Sequence record: MN871453.1
Direction: 5' to 3' (one strand)
DNA length: 64,000 nt
Shown here: positions 12,247-16,820 of the stretch, in pieces
Position numbering within the stretch: position 1 is the first letter of the stretch
Layout: every line of letters begins with the position of its first letter
Translations under genes and position numbers: made by a program
Notes under the pieces: model-generated
What the model saw: only the letters and a program-made list of their open reading frames with translations
The model's database searches: none
Told to the model about the DNA's origin: nothing

Positions 12247-12531
12247 TTAATTATTTTTTGATGAATTCAAACTACCATAAAACATCAAACCGATGATTCC
12301 GGTAAGGATAGTTAAAGTCAACAGTTCGATGTTGAAAATAACTGCCCCAATAATAGAGAGGATGAAAATAGCTGAAATGACAGCATAAAGTACTTTAGTA
12401 CCTTTATTACTCTTACCTTTTTCTTCTTCGGTTTTTGCATTCTTGATGGCCAATTTGTTCATTCCAATGGCCGTCCAAAGAACAAAACTTATAGCGAAGG
12501 TTAATGCAATAATGATGATGGAAGTTAACAT
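12247..12531 (-). CDS. Small membrane protein (3 TM)
   Basis: 94 aa, mostly hydrophobic, AAGGA SD. Confidence 0.7.
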   Translation of the reverse strand: MLTSIIIIALTFAISFVLWTAIGMNKLAIKNAKTEEEKGKSNKGTKVLYAVISAIFILSIIGAVIFNIELLTLTILTGIIGLMFYGSLNSSKNN

Positions 12532-12865
12532 AATTTTTCCTTTTACTTTAAGAGTAGACTTAGACGTGAGAGAGTTGTTTGCGTTATAAGAGTCGCATAC
12601 GGCGATGTCCAGAACCAGACGGCGAAGCCTGTCATTTGTTCTGCAACTACCGAACCAGTAAGAGGGTTTACTGCTATTGTACCTGAACTCTGATCTTTCC
12701 TCGATTTCGGAAGAGTCAGTAGGTACAACGCCACAGCCTCGATTACAGGTGTCGGGTGGGTAACGAGAAATATCGTCTTATAACGGTTTGAGAGTGTGAG
12801 AATTTAATTTAGCTTATCGTAAGGCGTTTCCTTCTTATCTCGTGTGCCAAGGGTGAGGTGACGAC

Positions 12866-13153
12866 TTAAGCGGTTACCGCTGCGTCAGAGACGTCGGTCT
12901 CGCCTGCGTCAGTCGCAGTCTCGCCGTCAGTGGCAGGAGAAATGACGGTTTTGAGGTTGTTGTAGCTATCGTGAATATAGCTGAAGATAACCAAGACCGC
13001 AAAAGCGTAGGCTGCCACTTCCATGGCAGTAGCCATGCAGAACGCGGCGAAGATTGCCAGCGCGGCAACGATCAGGGTGTCGGTGATGAAAGCAAAGATT
13101 GCTTTGGTTTTCTCAGTGAAAGAGAAAGAGAAGAACGCTTTGATTTTTTCCAT
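12866..13153 (-). CDS. Small membrane protein (2 TM, acidic tail)
   Basis: 95 aa, AAGGT SD. Confidence 0.75.
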   Translation of the reverse strand: MEKIKAFFSFSFTEKTKAIFAFITDTLIVAALAIFAAFCMATAMEVAAYAFAVLVIFSYIHDSYNNLKTVISPATDGETATDAGETDVSDAAVTA

Positions 13154-13233
13154 GATAATTTACCTTTTGAATTGAATAATTTAACTACGGGTGAGAGTGC
13201 ACTACTCACGCTGTTGAGAGGCAGCGCTTACTA

Positions 13234-13353
13234 CTATTTGACCGCTTTTAAGTAACTCCCTACGGCGACGGCGAAAACGCAGGCCGGAAGTAAAGCCAGG
13301 TCAAGAATAAGTACCGAGGAAATAATCCCCAGTACCACGAAAGACGTTTTCAT
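13234..13353 (-). CDS. 39-aa hydrophobic micro-protein
   Basis: Hand-translated MKTSFVVLGIISSVLILDLALLPACVFAVAVGSYLKAVK; TAATG overlap and GGAGG SD. Confidence 0.7.
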   Translation of the reverse strand: MKTSFVVLGIISSVLILDLALLPACVFAVAVGSYLKAVK

Positions 13354-13523
13354 TACAACGCCTCCGGTGAATGAGTTGCGTTGAAATTGGCTTTGTTAAA
13401 CTGCTCTTCTGAAAGCGCTCCAATAACTCCCGCGGCGAACGCTACCAGAACTGCTGGGATGATAGTCAGTTCAAAGAAGGTGCAGATCAGCAGAGTGAGA
13501 ATTAACGTGATGAAGTAAGACAT
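13353..13523 (-). CDS. 56-aa hydrophobic micro-protein
   Basis: Hand-translated MSYFITLILTLLICTFFELTIIPAVLVAFAAGVIGALSEEQFNKANFNATHSPEAL; GGGAGA SD. Confidence 0.7.
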   Translation of the reverse strand: MSYFITLILTLLICTFFELTIIPAVLVAFAAGVIGALSEEQFNKANFNATHSPEAL

Positions 13524-13538
13524 GATGATTTCTCCCTC

Positions 13539-13697
13539 TTAGGATAAATAGGTAACGGAGACTAACAGAGCGAACGGCGAAACAATATACCAGACGAGCA
13601 CAGAGACGAACCCGTAAAGGATGGCCATCGGTAACGATACGCCGAAACAAAGCAATGCAATGAGAGTGACAATTAATAAAAGTATACTTTCTTTCAT
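13539..13697 (-). CDS. 52-aa hydrophobic micro-protein
   Basis: Hand-translated MKESILLLIVTLIALLCFGVSLPMAILYGFVSVLVWYIVSPFALLVSVTYLS; GAGGT SD. Confidence 0.7.
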   Translation of the reverse strand: MKESILLLIVTLIALLCFGVSLPMAILYGFVSVLVWYIVSPFALLVSVTYLS

Positions 13698-13753
13698 TTT
13701 ACTTTACCTCTTATTGGTTTAGTTATTTGGAAAAGACTTTTTCCTTTCCTATT

Positions 13754-13786
13754 TCACCTTAGCAATATATACATCAAAAAAACTGC
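13754..13786 (-). promoter_or_regulatory. Putative early (virion RNAP) promoter P1
   Basis: GCAGTT-N11-TATATTGC-N4-GTGA on the minus strand; one of eight aligned copies. Confidence 0.7.
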
Positions 13787-13838
13787 ATTTCGATTTATTG
13801 AAGTTTTTATGAAACATCTACCTTGGGGATTGAATACG

Positions 13839-14378
13839 ATGAAGAAAATTACGCTTTGGGGACATCCTGTTCCGTTATTGGGCTTCTTGCATTGGCTGAG
13901 TTTTTTATTGATCTACTTCGCAGCGTTGATCATTTGCGTCATTGTCACACCGTTTCTACCGGCCTTTGCGACGAAGGACGGGAAACTACCGAAATGGCTG
14001 AAATGGTTCGACACACCGGACAATAGTTTAGATGGGGATTCCGGTTGGAAAGAGAAACACTCTCTCTGGGTAAAGGTACTCCCTGAATGGGCGCAAACTT
14101 ACGTCGCCCGTGTCTTTTGGTTATACCGCAATCCATTGTACGGTTTTTCTATTAGCGTGTTAGGTGCACCAAAAGACAAATTCCGTCAACCTGTTTTAGA
14201 GGGTAAAGGGTTTGATGTTAAAGGCACCTATAAGTCCCATTACTGGATGGTCTACTTCATGCGTGACGACCACGTGAAGAAACGCCGGTTTAAGGTTTAC
14301 ATTGGATGGAAACTGAAAGCAGAAGGATTTGAGAAATACCAGTTTGCATTTCTGATCAACCCGTTCCAAACGCCGTAA
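13839..14378 (+). CDS. Conserved phage membrane protein (LPKWLKWFDTPDNSLDGD...WLYRNP type), late-type island
   Basis: N-terminal TM. Likely start at 13839 (GGGGA SD); TATG at 13808. Confidence 0.7.
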   Translation: MKKITLWGHPVPLLGFLHWLSFLLIYFAALIICVIVTPFLPAFATKDGKLPKWLKWFDTPDNSLDGDSGWKEKHSLWVKVLPEWAQTYVARVFWLYRNPLYGFSISVLGAPKDKFRQPVLEGKGFDVKGTYKSHYWMVYFMRDDHVKKRRFKVYIGWKLKAEGFEKYQFAFLINPFQTP

Positions 14379-14390
14379 AAGAAACAAAAA

Positions 14391-14416
14391 AAAGAGAGGG
14401 CAAACGCCCTCTCTTT
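14391..14416. terminator. Bidirectional terminator
   Basis: AAAGAGAGGGC-AAAC-GCCCTCTCTTT between convergent genes. Confidence 0.85.
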
Positions 14417-14417
14417 T

Positions 14418-14858
14418 TTATATTCTTTTTAAAGAATCGATTTCCAGCGCCACTTCAAATTCGTAAAGCATTCGCCCGAAGAAGGTCGCAATCGTGAGCA
14501 AGCCGAGGAGGTATTCGTGATGTACCATCAACAGAATCGTAAAAGCCAGTGCAACGATGATTCGCTGACAAACATTCATTCCGCCTACAAAGGTGATGTG
14601 TTTTTCTGCCTTTTCAACGATTACTTGGCGCATAGCGGGGGTCAGGACGGCTCGTGTTATATCGGGCAGTGAAATATATTGGTAAAGCACCCAGCCTAAA
14701 CGACCGAGGATGAGTGCTACTGCCCATAGACGAACCAAATCAAAGGCTGTTTCGTTTTGCTTAAAACACAATACAGCGAGTACCACGCAAGAGAGCAGCG
14801 AGCAAATTTTAGAGGTGAGGGTAGAGAGGTAGAACATCTTTGTATTCCTTTTCTTCAT
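14418..14858 (-). CDS. Integral membrane protein (about 4 TM)
   Basis: 146 aa, hydrophobic segments. Confidence 0.7.
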   Translation of the reverse strand: MKKRNTKMFYLSTLTSKICSLLSCVVLAVLCFKQNETAFDLVRLWAVALILGRLGWVLYQYISLPDITRAVLTPAMRQVIVEKAEKHITFVGGMNVCQRIIVALAFTILLMVHHEYLLGLLTIATFFGRMLYEFEVALEIDSLKRI

Positions 14859-14908
14859 GAATTGTCATAGTTGTCAGGGAACGGTTGTTCCCTGACAATG
14901 GACGGAGA

Positions 14909-15400
14909 TTAGTTACAGGTCAGAACGAGCTTCCCTTGGATATGGGTCACGCCAAATGGCATCTGCTGAGCGTCCAGGTTGATTTTCGGAGCCAGCGCCA
15001 GCGTTTTGGTGTTACCTGCGATATTCTGCGCTTGTGCAGCATCAGTCCACGCGTATTCCACATTGTTAACGAATACGGAAGTTTGATCGCGGTTGCTCAC
15101 CGTCATCAGGTTATCGGCAAAGTCGAAGCGACCAGTGTTTTGGGTCAGTTTCGCTTCAGTGAGGCGCCAGTTTTTCTGGGCCGTGTTGCTGGTCAGCACG
15201 AAGTTGATCGCCTTACTGTTATTAGTGCCGGTTTCGCCTTTCAACAGGATACCGCCGACTTGAACACCGTTCGCGTAATCGATACCGCAGGAGATTTGAG
15301 TTTGGTTGTATTCTGCGTCCCAGACCAGTTCATTGGCAGCAAAAGCCGAAGAGGTCAGTGCCAGAGCGATTACGGAAACAGCGATTTTGATAGATTTCAT
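14909..15400 (-). CDS. Exported fimbrial-subunit-like protein
   Basis: Signal peptide MKSIKIAVSVIALALTSSAFA; alternating N-terminal strand ending in Cys (ELVWDAEYNQTQISC); C-terminal strand PFGVTHIQGKLVLTCN; AGGA SD. Confidence 0.55.
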   Translation of the reverse strand: MKSIKIAVSVIALALTSSAFAANELVWDAEYNQTQISCGIDYANGVQVGGILLKGETGTNNSKAINFVLTSNTAQKNWRLTEAKLTQNTGRFDFADNLMTVSNRDQTSVFVNNVEYAWTDAAQAQNIAGNTKTLALAPKINLDAQQMPFGVTHIQGKLVLTCN

Positions 15401-15460
15401 TTGATACAATTCCTATTTGAATAAAGAAAGGTTTTAGTTAAAAACGACGAGAGTTTACTA

Positions 15461-15865
15461 CTATGGATCAACCTGCATGGCACGCTGAGAATCCATTTGT
15501 TGATTCTTTTCCATGCGATCCATTTCCATCTCCAAACGTTTAATTTGGAGTTCTTTCTGACGGCGACTCAAATCAGCGAGTCTTTCACATGACTCTGCCA
15601 TTTTATCGTCGCCCCCGAGAGGGATACTGATGCTAACGTAACCGCCTTTATCGTCATTAGCATAACGATACTCGCTGCCGTTATTTCCGTACGCACCAAC
15701 GTTGATTGTCGCCTGAGGACGACTAACCTCACAGCTAATATCACCGTTTTGAATACGGCCGCGGTTTTCTGCGATGTTGTTGGTGATATAGGGAGCATCA
15801 GCAAAGGCGGTACAAGCCGTTACCATTGTTACAATGAATAAGAGAATTTTATTCGAGATCGACAT
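15461..15865 (-). CDS. Exported protein with beta-hairpin and C-terminal coiled coil (oligomeric pore candidate)
   Basis: Signal peptide, QATINVGAYG...GGYVSISIPLG, two Cys, coiled coil RRQKELQIKRLEMEMDRMEK. Overlaps the upstream gene by 17 nt. Confidence 0.55.
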   Translation of the reverse strand: MSISNKILLFIVTMVTACTAFADAPYITNNIAENRGRIQNGDISCEVSRPQATINVGAYGNNGSEYRYANDDKGGYVSISIPLGGDDKMAESCERLADLSRRQKELQIKRLEMEMDRMEKNQQMDSQRAMQVDP

Positions 15866-16220
15866 TGAAACATGCCTCTGGCTGAATTTCCGATTGAGGG
15901 ACAACCTGCATGGCGCAGATCATTACGTATTTTTTACCGTTACTTCTCTCCCGAATAAATTTATTATTGACTTTGATAGGGAAGGTTGCCCTTTCTCCAC
16001 CGAAGACATATTTTTTATACGGAACGCCGTTTTTGTCGGCGATTTTTTTATCTTCGACGCGAAATACAAAATCAGAAGATTCTTTCGAATCAACAAACAT
16101 CTCAACAACTGTATAGTTGTCGTATCCGATCGGTGTTACCCGCTGCACCGGGCCGAAATAAAATGCCATGGCATTAACAGAGAACAGCGACAAAAGAGTA
16201 AGTAGTAATAAGTGTTTCAT
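15849..16220 (-). CDS. Exported single Ig-fold, chaperone-like protein
   Basis: Signal peptide MKHLLLLTLLSLFSVNAMA; beta-rich 104-aa mature chain ending YVMICAMQ...EACF. Confidence 0.5.
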   Translation of the reverse strand: MKHLLLLTLLSLFSVNAMAFYFGPVQRVTPIGYDNYTVVEMFVDSKESSDFVFRVEDKKIADKNGVPYKKYVFGGERATFPIKVNNKFIRERSNGKKYVMICAMQVVPQSEIQPEACFNVDLE

Positions 16221-16286
16221 TCAATTTCTCGGTGAAAGAAAATAATAGAGGGAGTGAAGGGATTTAAATCCCTTCACTGTATAATC

Positions 16287-16712
16287 TTATTTGCAATGAC
16301 GGCGCGGTTGATGGTTAAAGTTATTCTTCAAACGCTCCAGTGAACTTTTAGATGCCGGCGGTTCGGTGACTTTGGTGTTGTTGATAGATACAACATTTTG
16401 CTTTCCAGTGCACGGCCAAATTTCAAGAATTAATTCGGCTGTATCGTCTTTTTCCAGACCACCATAAACTTCGGAAAGAAGGTAGTAATCTGAAAATGCC
16501 GCTGCGTCTAAAATCAGATCAGAGATCTTAGAACCCGCGACAGGGTAAAGTTGACTAGCAACTAATTCGCCGTCTAAAATGTAAAGCGCCACCGAAATTT
16601 TTGGTGTGGTATAAATAGCTTTGACTTTAATCTCTTTAACAGTATAAGAACTTTTATTAATAGCTTTTTGTACGTTTTCGATAGTTTTCGCAGTCAGTAA
16701 CATTAATAGCAC
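16287..16712 (-). CDS. Hypothetical protein
   Basis: 141 aa, first gene after promoter P2. Confidence 0.6.
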   Translation of the reverse strand: MLLMLLTAKTIENVQKAINKSSYTVKEIKVKAIYTTPKISVALYILDGELVASQLYPVAGSKISDLILDAAAFSDYYLLSEVYGGLEKDDTAELILEIWPCTGKQNVVSINNTKVTEPPASKSSLERLKNNFNHQPRRHCK

Positions 16713-16762
16713 TCCAATAGGTTTAGTTATTTTATTTACGGAAAGCTTTTATCTTTCCTAAA

Positions 16763-16795
16763 TCACTGTAGCTATATAGATGTTAAAAAAATTGG
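16763..16795 (-). promoter_or_regulatory. Putative early promoter P2
   Basis: CCAATT-N11-TATATAGC-N4-GTGA. Confidence 0.7.
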
Positions 16796-16820
16796 AGATG
16801 GGTTCATCTCCAATTGCCTG

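Follow-up and report, generated by a model that had tools for sequence, protein, structure and literature searches.

Gram-negative pili that are joined by donor-strand exchange are thought to require a large usher. In the chaperone-usher systems, of which the alternate class 5 CFA/I pili (CfaA/CfaB/CfaC) and the archaic Csu pili with their SCPU-domain subunits are closest to the gene set described here, small Sec-exported immunoglobulin (Ig)-like subunits have a free segment at the N-terminus and an alternating strand at the C-terminus, a PapD-like Ig-fold protein is their partner, several subunit paralogues occur in one operon, and the genes follow the order subunit, chaperone, membrane component. 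Curli are made by a small dedicated set of Sec-exported proteins that uses no ATPase and includes a small Ig-like periplasmic accessory protein (CsgC), and their export proceeds through an oligomeric outer-membrane channel to which many protomers contribute short hairpins. Strand-complemented fibres that do without an usher are represented by TasA/TapA of Bacillus, the archaeal threads and the cannulae. Here we analysed a stretch of 64,000 nucleotides from sequence record MN871453.1 (hereafter the window), which originates from a ~299-kb Klebsiella jumbo myophage. It carries three adjacent genes, here called A, B and C, that an original prediction made from the sequence alone had described as a pilus-like export cassette with chaperone-like (A), pore-like (B) and pilin-like (C) products and no usher. 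We found that A, B and C recur together as a module in phages and bacteria, and that its predicted proteins resemble the parts of chaperone-usher systems without belonging to them.

Together with a fourth gene, D, the three genes form a run of consecutive open reading frames (ORFs), all on the minus strand, at the positions and with the sequence strings originally given. Their starts match the GenBank annotation of the relatives vB_KpM_FBKp24 (gp143-140), MJ359 and Centimanus, in each of which all four products are hypothetical proteins. Gene A (15849..16220) encodes 123 aa, with the signal peptide at 16164-16220 and a mature protein of 104 aa; gene B (15461..15865) encodes 134 aa from its ATG, with the signal peptide at 15797-15865 and an exported form of about 111 aa; and gene C (14909..15400) encodes 163 aa from its ATG, with the signal peptide at 15338-15400 and a mature protein of 142 aa. 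The three signal peptides that had been noticed earlier were indeed present, each consisting of a single N-terminal hydrophobic segment with a basic n-region and an A-x-A site (AMA before F in A, AFA before D in B and AFA before A in C), and the proteins are probably exported by Sec and then cleaved. The stop of A and the start of B overlap by 17 nt (15849..15865, from the ORF coordinates and the annotation of the relatives), as had been pointed out, and we read this overlap as a predicted translational coupling; overlapping or abutting A and B genes recur in seven other loci (L004, L012, L013, L018, L022, L026 and L029). The ratio of nonsynonymous to synonymous substitutions (dN/dS) of the cassette genes was 0-0.27 in the comparison with FBKp24, and in the comparison with MJ359 the proportion of nonsynonymous differences (pN) was 0.11-0.25 with saturated synonymous sites. 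Judged by these substitution patterns, the cassette genes are real and under purifying selection.

The original prediction mentioned comparable triplets from other phages and from marine bacteria and suggested that their neighbourhood might be conserved. Both turned out to be the case. Homologues of C formed only 12 clusters in a 5.8-billion-protein index, and in every contig bearing a close C homologue an A-like and a B-like gene precede C. A profile search with B against 1.84 billion representatives (E ≤ 1e-3) returned 94 family members, all 110-160 aa long and matched over their full length, and of the cassette components B can be detected most widely and is most strictly linked. Among cultured phages, tblastn with B found four unrelated genera: Maaswegvirus, Eowynvirus and Miamivirus, which are jumbo phages, and Henunavirus (Vequintavirinae, 147 kb), whose triplet is placed within a tRNA island; the same search with distant B homologues returned only the Erwinia phage or nothing. 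In Erwinia phage pEp_SNUABM_01 (L014, 4649-5872; Vequintavirinae), the A-B-C genes stand in the middle of an island of 23 tRNA genes, and tRNA islands are usual landing sites of accessory genes. When the proteins of 14 diverse loci were compared all against all, A, B and C were the only three families common to them, and the order A-B-C(n), with one or more C genes, or C-A-B was kept in about 40 bacterial and phage loci.

Distant copies also occur on chromosomes. In an Endozoicomonadaceae chromosome the cassette lies between pyrE and housekeeping genes, and hhalign related its A to the phage family with 95.7% probability (E 9e-9) and its C with E 9e-4 over the full length. The chromosomal cassette of Vibrio parahaemolyticus adjoins pntAB, that of V. 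alfacsensis has two C paralogues and an AraC-type regulator, and a Paraferrimonas chromosome carries another distant copy. In Paraferrimonas sedimenticola (L029, 6284-7893) a thioredoxin-fold gene with a signal peptide is located directly upstream of A, although the B and C copies of this cassette have lost every Cys that is otherwise conserved. Prophage-like regions with the cassette were found in V. harveyi, with three C paralogues, and in Aeromonas veronii. In the A. veronii prophage, which comes from a metagenome-assembled genome (MAG; L020, 7208-9600), an uncalled A-like ORF fills the gap after a Peptidase_M15 endolysin gene, and the C-like gene is followed by one for a 185-aa protein whose C-terminus ends in Phe and resembles that of outer-membrane proteins. 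The distant C-like proteins matched the phage C family over their full length (hhalign E 3.5e-5); in common with it they have an alternating segment at the N-terminus that is followed by the invariant Cys, and the C-terminal pattern φ-P-A-G, strand, Cys (φ, hydrophobic residue).

To extend the survey we used a 36-nt degenerate motif from B, which samples only part of the family. In species-representative genomes (596 Gb) it matched 31 genomes, 28 of them with a true B; the true copies belong to many species of Vibrio, Aliivibrio and Photobacterium and to Erythrobacteraceae, Sphingomonadales, Caulobacterales and Hyphomicrobiales. Gammaproteobacteria have the genes in the order A-B-C(n) and Alphaproteobacteria in the order C-A-B, and loci of Vibrio, V. 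harveyi and Photobacterium contained two to six C paralogues. The largest cassette found was that of Photobacterium makurazakiensis (L035, 460-4221), with up to six C-like genes around a single A-B pair. In IMG/VR the motif matched at least 120 viral contigs, at least 114 of them with a true B. Among the matches listed, B is preceded by a C-like gene in 86, and an A-like ORF lies between the two in 82 of these 86; several of the cassette-bearing contigs belong to T5-like marine phages. Because A, B and C alone are common to the 14 loci, their order is kept and A lies between C and B in 82 of the 86 listed contigs, we regard the triplet as a module. If IMG/VR comprises about 100 Gb, which is our estimate of its order of magnitude, phages show a strong enrichment of the module relative to the 596 Gb of genomes. 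B also occurs on Vibrio and Mesorhizobium plasmids, and the B of the window itself had no plasmid match. Two short contigs binned as MAGs of 'Melainabacteria' and 'Aquiluna' (L034 and L050) show the C-A-B order typical of marine phage contigs and are probably mis-binned viral DNA.

The identity of C as a pilin-like protein rests on its predicted fold. The AlphaFold2 (AF2) model of the mature protein (predicted local distance difference test, pLDDT, 90.2; predicted template-modelling score, pTM, 0.82) has six main strands, with residues 1-16 in coil. This N-terminal extension (15290-15337), unstructured in the monomer model, is conserved to the same degree as the core in the family alignment, with E3, V5, W6 and A8 invariant. 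It leads to Cys38 (15287-15289), and the C-terminal strand (14915-14944) ends in Cys162; both cysteines are invariant in 45 C-like proteins. Throughout the family an i/i+2 hydrophobic periodicity runs ahead of the invariant Cys and a φ-P-A-G turn precedes the C-terminal strand; the original prediction had noted the two strands in a single protein. In a Foldseek search of the PDB, the best match was CfaB (E 1.9e-3, template-modelling (TM) score 0.47), and about 30 of the 36 top neighbours were chaperone-usher pilins (CfaB, CS17, the PapG pilin domain, FimI, FimA, PapE, PapA, SafA, CsuA/B and CupE) or other strand-complemented fibre subunits (TasA, uromodulin/GP2, cannulae and an archaeal thread). 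Predicted viral structures (BFVD) contained one clear relative, A0A2I7S9Y1 (E 3.9e-6, TM 0.67). SCPU (PF05229) was the most recurrent Pfam family over the 45 C-like proteins, with sub-threshold matches in four of them (best E 0.086; cut-off 22.4 bits); the C of this phage itself matched neither Fimbrial (PF00419) nor SCPU in Pfam. The claim that C is pilin-like is thus partly supported: the fold neighbours are mostly pilins, but the best match is marginal. Likewise, the six main strands and the free N-terminal residues of the model could be those of an incomplete Ig fold that lacks the G strand and has a donor extension, as had been proposed, but the Foldseek scores are marginal.

Mature A was predicted to be an all-beta, complete seven-strand Ig-like sandwich of one domain (pLDDT 92.9, pTM 0.83), in agreement with the ~104-aa beta-rich single domain recognized originally. 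Its Foldseek neighbours in the PDB were MSP domains and the pilus chaperones FaeE, CfaA, CsuC, PapD and FimC (E 4e-3 to 2e-2; TM score relative to the query, TMq, ~0.5), and members of the PapD-like superfamily made up 23 of the top 50. CfaA is the chaperone of the class 5 system to which CfaB, the best match of C, also belongs. The matches of A and C are individually marginal but coherent, as the best pilus matches of both models come from one class of system. Sequence and profile searches of the PDB with A gave no meaningful match, and the A-like proteins had no match to PapD_N (PF00345) or PapD_C (PF02753) in Pfam. NCBIfam matches of A to Shiga-toxin B-subunit models were rejected as chance, because they cover only the signal peptide, as does a match of the C gene to BhsA (residues 1-20 and 1-36, E 0.05-0.14). 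In the A family only F3, F34, P62, C83 and C98 are invariant, the last two forming a C-terminal Cys pair. As for the original claim that A is chaperone-like, the Ig-like fold and the PapD-superfamily neighbours bear it out, but the likeness covers one chaperone domain (E ~8e-3, TMq 0.5) and the conserved basic anchor residues of a chaperone are missing. A-like proteins nearly always have His at their predicted mature N-terminus: in all 82 IMG/VR copies listed an HE(M/W/L)TPxYP sequence follows the cleavage-site Ala, and His is also found in Vibrio, Endozoicomonas and MJ359, with Phe in its place in this phage and FBKp24. This residue could serve a histidine-brace-like function, or it may be dispensable.

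For B, the Cys pair, the two amphipathic strands and the coiled coil that had been seen in one sequence all reappeared in the family column profile. Its N-terminal half consists of the signal peptide, a short conserved peptide, the motif D-R-(V/I)-R...C and a strand whose positions 54/56/58 are hydrophobic and which has one invariant Gly; its C-terminal half comprises a strand with five alternating hydrophobic residues (75/77/79/81/83) flanked by Tyr, Pro and Gly, the motif R-φ-D-C and 3-4 heptads (96-118). In the window these elements correspond to Cys45 (15731-15733), amphipathic strand 1 (15686-15712), strand 2 (15614-15646), Cys93 (15587-15589) and the coiled-coil helix (15491-15583), all on the minus strand. 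An N/D/S/Y-rich loop of strongly varying length separates the strands, each strand has a Tyr at its loop-side end, and the Cys pair, kept in 49 of 50 family members, staples the base of the hairpin, after which the heptads follow. The profile fits a hairpin that is stapled by a disulfide and sits on a coiled-coil stalk. A coiled coil together with few amphipathic beta-strands per protomer, an arrangement that makes sense only in an oligomer, is likewise found in trimeric autotransporter anchors, TolC and foldon-type oligomers; in comparison with the autotransporter anchors, B has the reverse domain order and two strands only, and shows no sequence or profile similarity to them. Searches with the single sequence and the profile detected no relative of B in Pfam (50 family members scanned), NCBIfam, PADLOC or the PDB, or in PHROGs with an assigned function. 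PDB searches with A, B and C by sequence or profile returned nothing, or only leucine-zipper and antibody Ig matches, and none of A-D had a meaningful match in Pfam, PHROGs, NCBIfam or PADLOC. B was also considered as a lipoprotein and rejected, as the Cys in its signal peptide is not conserved and the AXA site is.

The absence of an usher held. There is no ORF of ~800 aa in the transcription unit of the cassette, and no Usher domain (PF00577) within 5-8 kb on either side in the Pfam-annotated loci L004-L029; this check used the precomputed Pfam hits of the L004-L029 flanks, the 8-kb loci L030-L140 lying outside the scan. The cassette shares with chaperone-usher pili the features of the subunits, the Ig-fold partner, the subunit paralogues and the gene order listed at the outset, and its best structural matches are CfaB for C and CfaA/FaeE for A. 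It differs from them in having no ~800-aa usher at the loci checked, in an A protein of one ~104-aa domain where the chaperone has two domains (~210 aa) with conserved basic cleft residues, in a C disulfide that links the N-terminal strand to the extreme C-terminus, and in an obligatory third, unrelated 110-aa protein, B; in addition, no cassette protein passes the Pfam thresholds for Fimbrial, SCPU, PapD_N, PapD_C or Usher. We conclude that the cassette works most like a chaperone-usher system, yet fails membership by the usher, the two-domain chaperone and the Pfam family of the subunits. With curli it has in common a small dedicated Sec-exported set without an ATPase and a small Ig-like periplasmic protein, and the pore that the original prediction proposed for B was modelled on the curli channel. 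In contrast to the channel protein CsgG (PF03783), B shows no similarity to that family and has no lipobox, and C is predicted to be folded and Ig-like rather than an amyloid repeat, which rules out a curli system. The usher-free strand-complemented fibres correspond to what we propose for C, with donor-strand-joined subunits and no usher, and TasA, cannulae and Sulfolobus thread subunits are among its structural neighbours; unlike the hosts of the cassette, the organisms that make these fibres have no outer membrane, and the accessory proteins they use are not related to A or B.

Taking together the observed gene structure, export signals, predicted folds, co-occurrence and lack of an usher, we tentatively favour, at rather less than even confidence, the view that A-B-C is a self-contained, mostly phage-borne, usher-free module for the assembly of a fibre or oligomer. 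The N-terminal extension of C would insert into the neighbouring subunit by donor-strand exchange and thus build a short fibre or an oligomer, and loci with two to six C paralogues could make mixed fibres. A, as a single-domain PapD/MSP-like sandwich, might hold C or B in the periplasm. Through the coiled coil at its C-terminus, B may form oligomers whose amphipathic hairpins, each stapled by a disulfide, could lie in the outer membrane and provide a platform or conduit in place of the ~800-aa usher; in the cassette B occupies the position that the usher gene has in the fim, csu and cfa operons. During the latent period the envelope of the infected Klebsiella cell would be decorated or remodelled by the product. 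Where the product is located in the cell and how the phage benefits are likewise inferred, and roles in adhesion, aggregation or as a decoy are speculation. The further-reaching proposal that A-B-C is a new Gram-negative surface-fibre machinery, that is, an usher-less donor-strand pilus with the B oligomer as outer-membrane conduit or anchor and A as a one-domain chaperone, through which lytic phages place fibres on infected cells, seems doubtful to us at present.

Several results weigh against usher-free assembly by this module. No pilin was found by sequence when the profile of the 45 C-like proteins was compared with the PDB (FimA only, E 7.7), and no Foldseek match of A or C to the PDB reached E ≤ 1e-3, with TM ≤ 0.5 throughout, for Ig-like sandwiches that are common; moreover, the AF2 models were built on shallow alignments of 13-15 sequences (15 for mature A, 13 for mature C). 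A consists of a single 104-aa domain with neither a second chaperone domain nor a conserved basic (Arg/Lys) anchor pair. Within the close family, identity is 21-34% for A against 48-57% for C, and this lower conservation of A is the reverse of the usual pattern of chaperones and pilins. The amphipathic hairpin and the coiled coil of B could equally belong to a soluble, foldon-like oligomerisation unit, and a pore of two-strand protomers would need at least 12 copies to let a folded pilin pass. The B and C copies of Paraferrimonas lack the Cys residues that are conserved elsewhere. In the literature we found no description of the cassette and no experimental data on any of its members.

The strongest competing explanation, which we consider possible although somewhat unlikely, is a non-polymerising complex of the periplasm or outer membrane, in which A and C would be Ig-like binders and B a coiled-coil oligomeriser, acting on a receptor, a porin, lipopolysaccharide (LPS) or the capsule machinery, for example in superinfection exclusion or envelope remodelling. 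The marginal likeness of A and C to chaperones and pilins suits such binders, as do the profile searches, where the 45-member C profile matched generic Ig domains only in the PDB and the A-like proteins gave weak matches to the generic Ig-like families FixG_C and Fn3. The same holds for the evolution of the locus. The flanks of the cassette are 95-98% identical to MJ359 and KpYy_2_45, whereas 14492-16428 is ~72% identical or unalignable, and a block so much more divergent than its surroundings is expected of host-interaction or arms-race genes; furthermore, strictly lytic phages belonging to four genera retain the cassette. A binding complex leaves unexplained that the structural neighbours of C are almost purely fibre subunits, though non-fibre Ig domains are more numerous in the PDB, that there are two to six C paralogues per locus, and that chromosomal, non-prophage copies lie next to AraC-type regulators.

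In the comparison with FBKp24 the relation is inverted, the block 13717-16799 being 91% identical and the flanks ~76%. Since identity differs between block and flanks in the comparisons with MJ359, KpYy_2_45 and FBKp24, the alignments indicate an evolutionary history of the cassette of its own, with block exchange among related jumbo phages.

Another explanation starts from the pilin-like fold of C, including its likeness to the assembly terminator FimI, and from the lack of an usher in the cassette: C could be a pilin mimic that is delivered by A and uses or jams the chaperone-usher machinery of the host, such as the type 1 and type 3 ushers of Klebsiella, capping or blocking the fimbriae. 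We regard this as improbable, since the cassette is also present in Vibrionaceae, in Sphingomonadales and in many marine phages, where the hosts possess unrelated ushers or none of this kind, B, the most detectable and strictly linked component, would have no role, and C has no sequence similarity to pilins of the Fimbrial family.

A periplasmic copper-handling module, in which A would be a CopC/YcnI-like sandwich using its N-terminal His, is suggested by the predicted mature His in nearly all A-like proteins; the size and all-beta fold of A presumably resemble those of CopC, which we take as a lead only. The A of the window itself begins with Phe, no second metal ligand is conserved, neither CopC, YcnI nor DUF1775 was matched in Pfam, CopC and YcnI were absent from the top 50 Foldseek neighbours, and B and the multiple C paralogues are left without explanation, so that this possibility is very slight. 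Least probable of all is a lysis accessory or spanin-like set joining the inner and outer membranes late in infection, for although B resembles i-spanins in its N-terminal hydrophobic segment, periplasmic Cys and coiled coil, the Aeromonas prophage cassette directly follows a Peptidase_M15 endolysin gene and cell-wall hydrolase genes lie 2-3 kb downstream in L004 and L015, the three proteins have conserved cleavable AXA sites in place of a conserved lipobox, non-prophage copies sit among housekeeping genes on chromosomes (Endozoicomonadaceae, Vibrio, Paraferrimonas), and the beta-rich A and C have no spanin counterpart. The cassette is not a two-component (Rz/Rz1) spanin pair, which consists of a lipobox-bearing outer-membrane lipoprotein and a type II coiled-coil protein of the inner membrane.

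If usher-free assembly is true, a three-gene cassette of ~1.3 kb in which a 110-aa protein does the job of the usher would represent a new assembly route and a compact display scaffold. Whatever the mechanism, it is a conserved and widespread gene set without a name in Pfam, NCBIfam or PHROGs. Unrelated lytic phages exchange the cassette, and purifying selection maintains it; from this exchange, the selection and its spread we conclude that it is likely to be an important, unstudied means by which phages alter the envelope of the infected cell.

The fourth gene of the run, D (14418..14837, minus strand; 139 aa with about four hydrophobic segments), had been listed in the original prediction alongside the three genes. 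A place for D in the module could not be upheld: the gene that follows C in L004 does not resemble it, and the all-against-all comparison of the 14 loci revealed no counterpart of D and no shared fourth family either upstream or downstream. D is therefore excluded from the conserved module and is, on the gene layout, apparently a co-transcribed, lineage-specific passenger. In Klebsiella phage Centimanus (L003, 3231-4199) the unit is split by a homing-type insertion, a 969-nt endonuclease gene that separates the homologue of D from that of C.

Upstream, a terminator-like hairpin on the minus strand (16790..16815; 11-bp stem followed by a T-run) marks the edge of the cassette's transcription unit and falls at the edge of the mosaic block common with FBKp24. 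The gene upstream of A in this unit (16287..16712, minus strand) encodes 141 aa without a signal peptide or hydrophobic segment; it had no Pfam or PHROG match and is absent from the other cassette-bearing loci, and thus stands outside the conserved module. The promoter annotation of FBKp24 is a software prediction only. At the downstream end the unit is closed by a bidirectional terminator-like hairpin (14388..14419, both strands; 14-bp stem with T-runs on either side) between D and a convergent gene.

The record itself belongs to a group, GenBank MN871447-MN871453, whose entries are titled 'Serratia phage Kp...', give Klebsiella pneumoniae in the host field and are unannotated; these organism names appear to be incorrect. 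Across 4 kb the window is 100% identical to the entries 'Serratia phage KpSz_1', 'KpZh_1' and 'KpZh_LPS_45' (host K. pneumoniae), and it is ~92% identical to vB_KpM_FBKp24 (genus Maaswegvirus). The convergent gene (13809-14378, plus strand) encodes a DUF7338/phrog_2143 membrane protein (E 1.5e-43), lies in the same mosaic block as the cassette and has its terminator in common with D. Directly downstream of the unit, the minus strand at 12247-13697 contains a series of at least four tiny ORFs (52-95 aa); each includes one or two hydrophobic segments and possibly encodes a small membrane protein.

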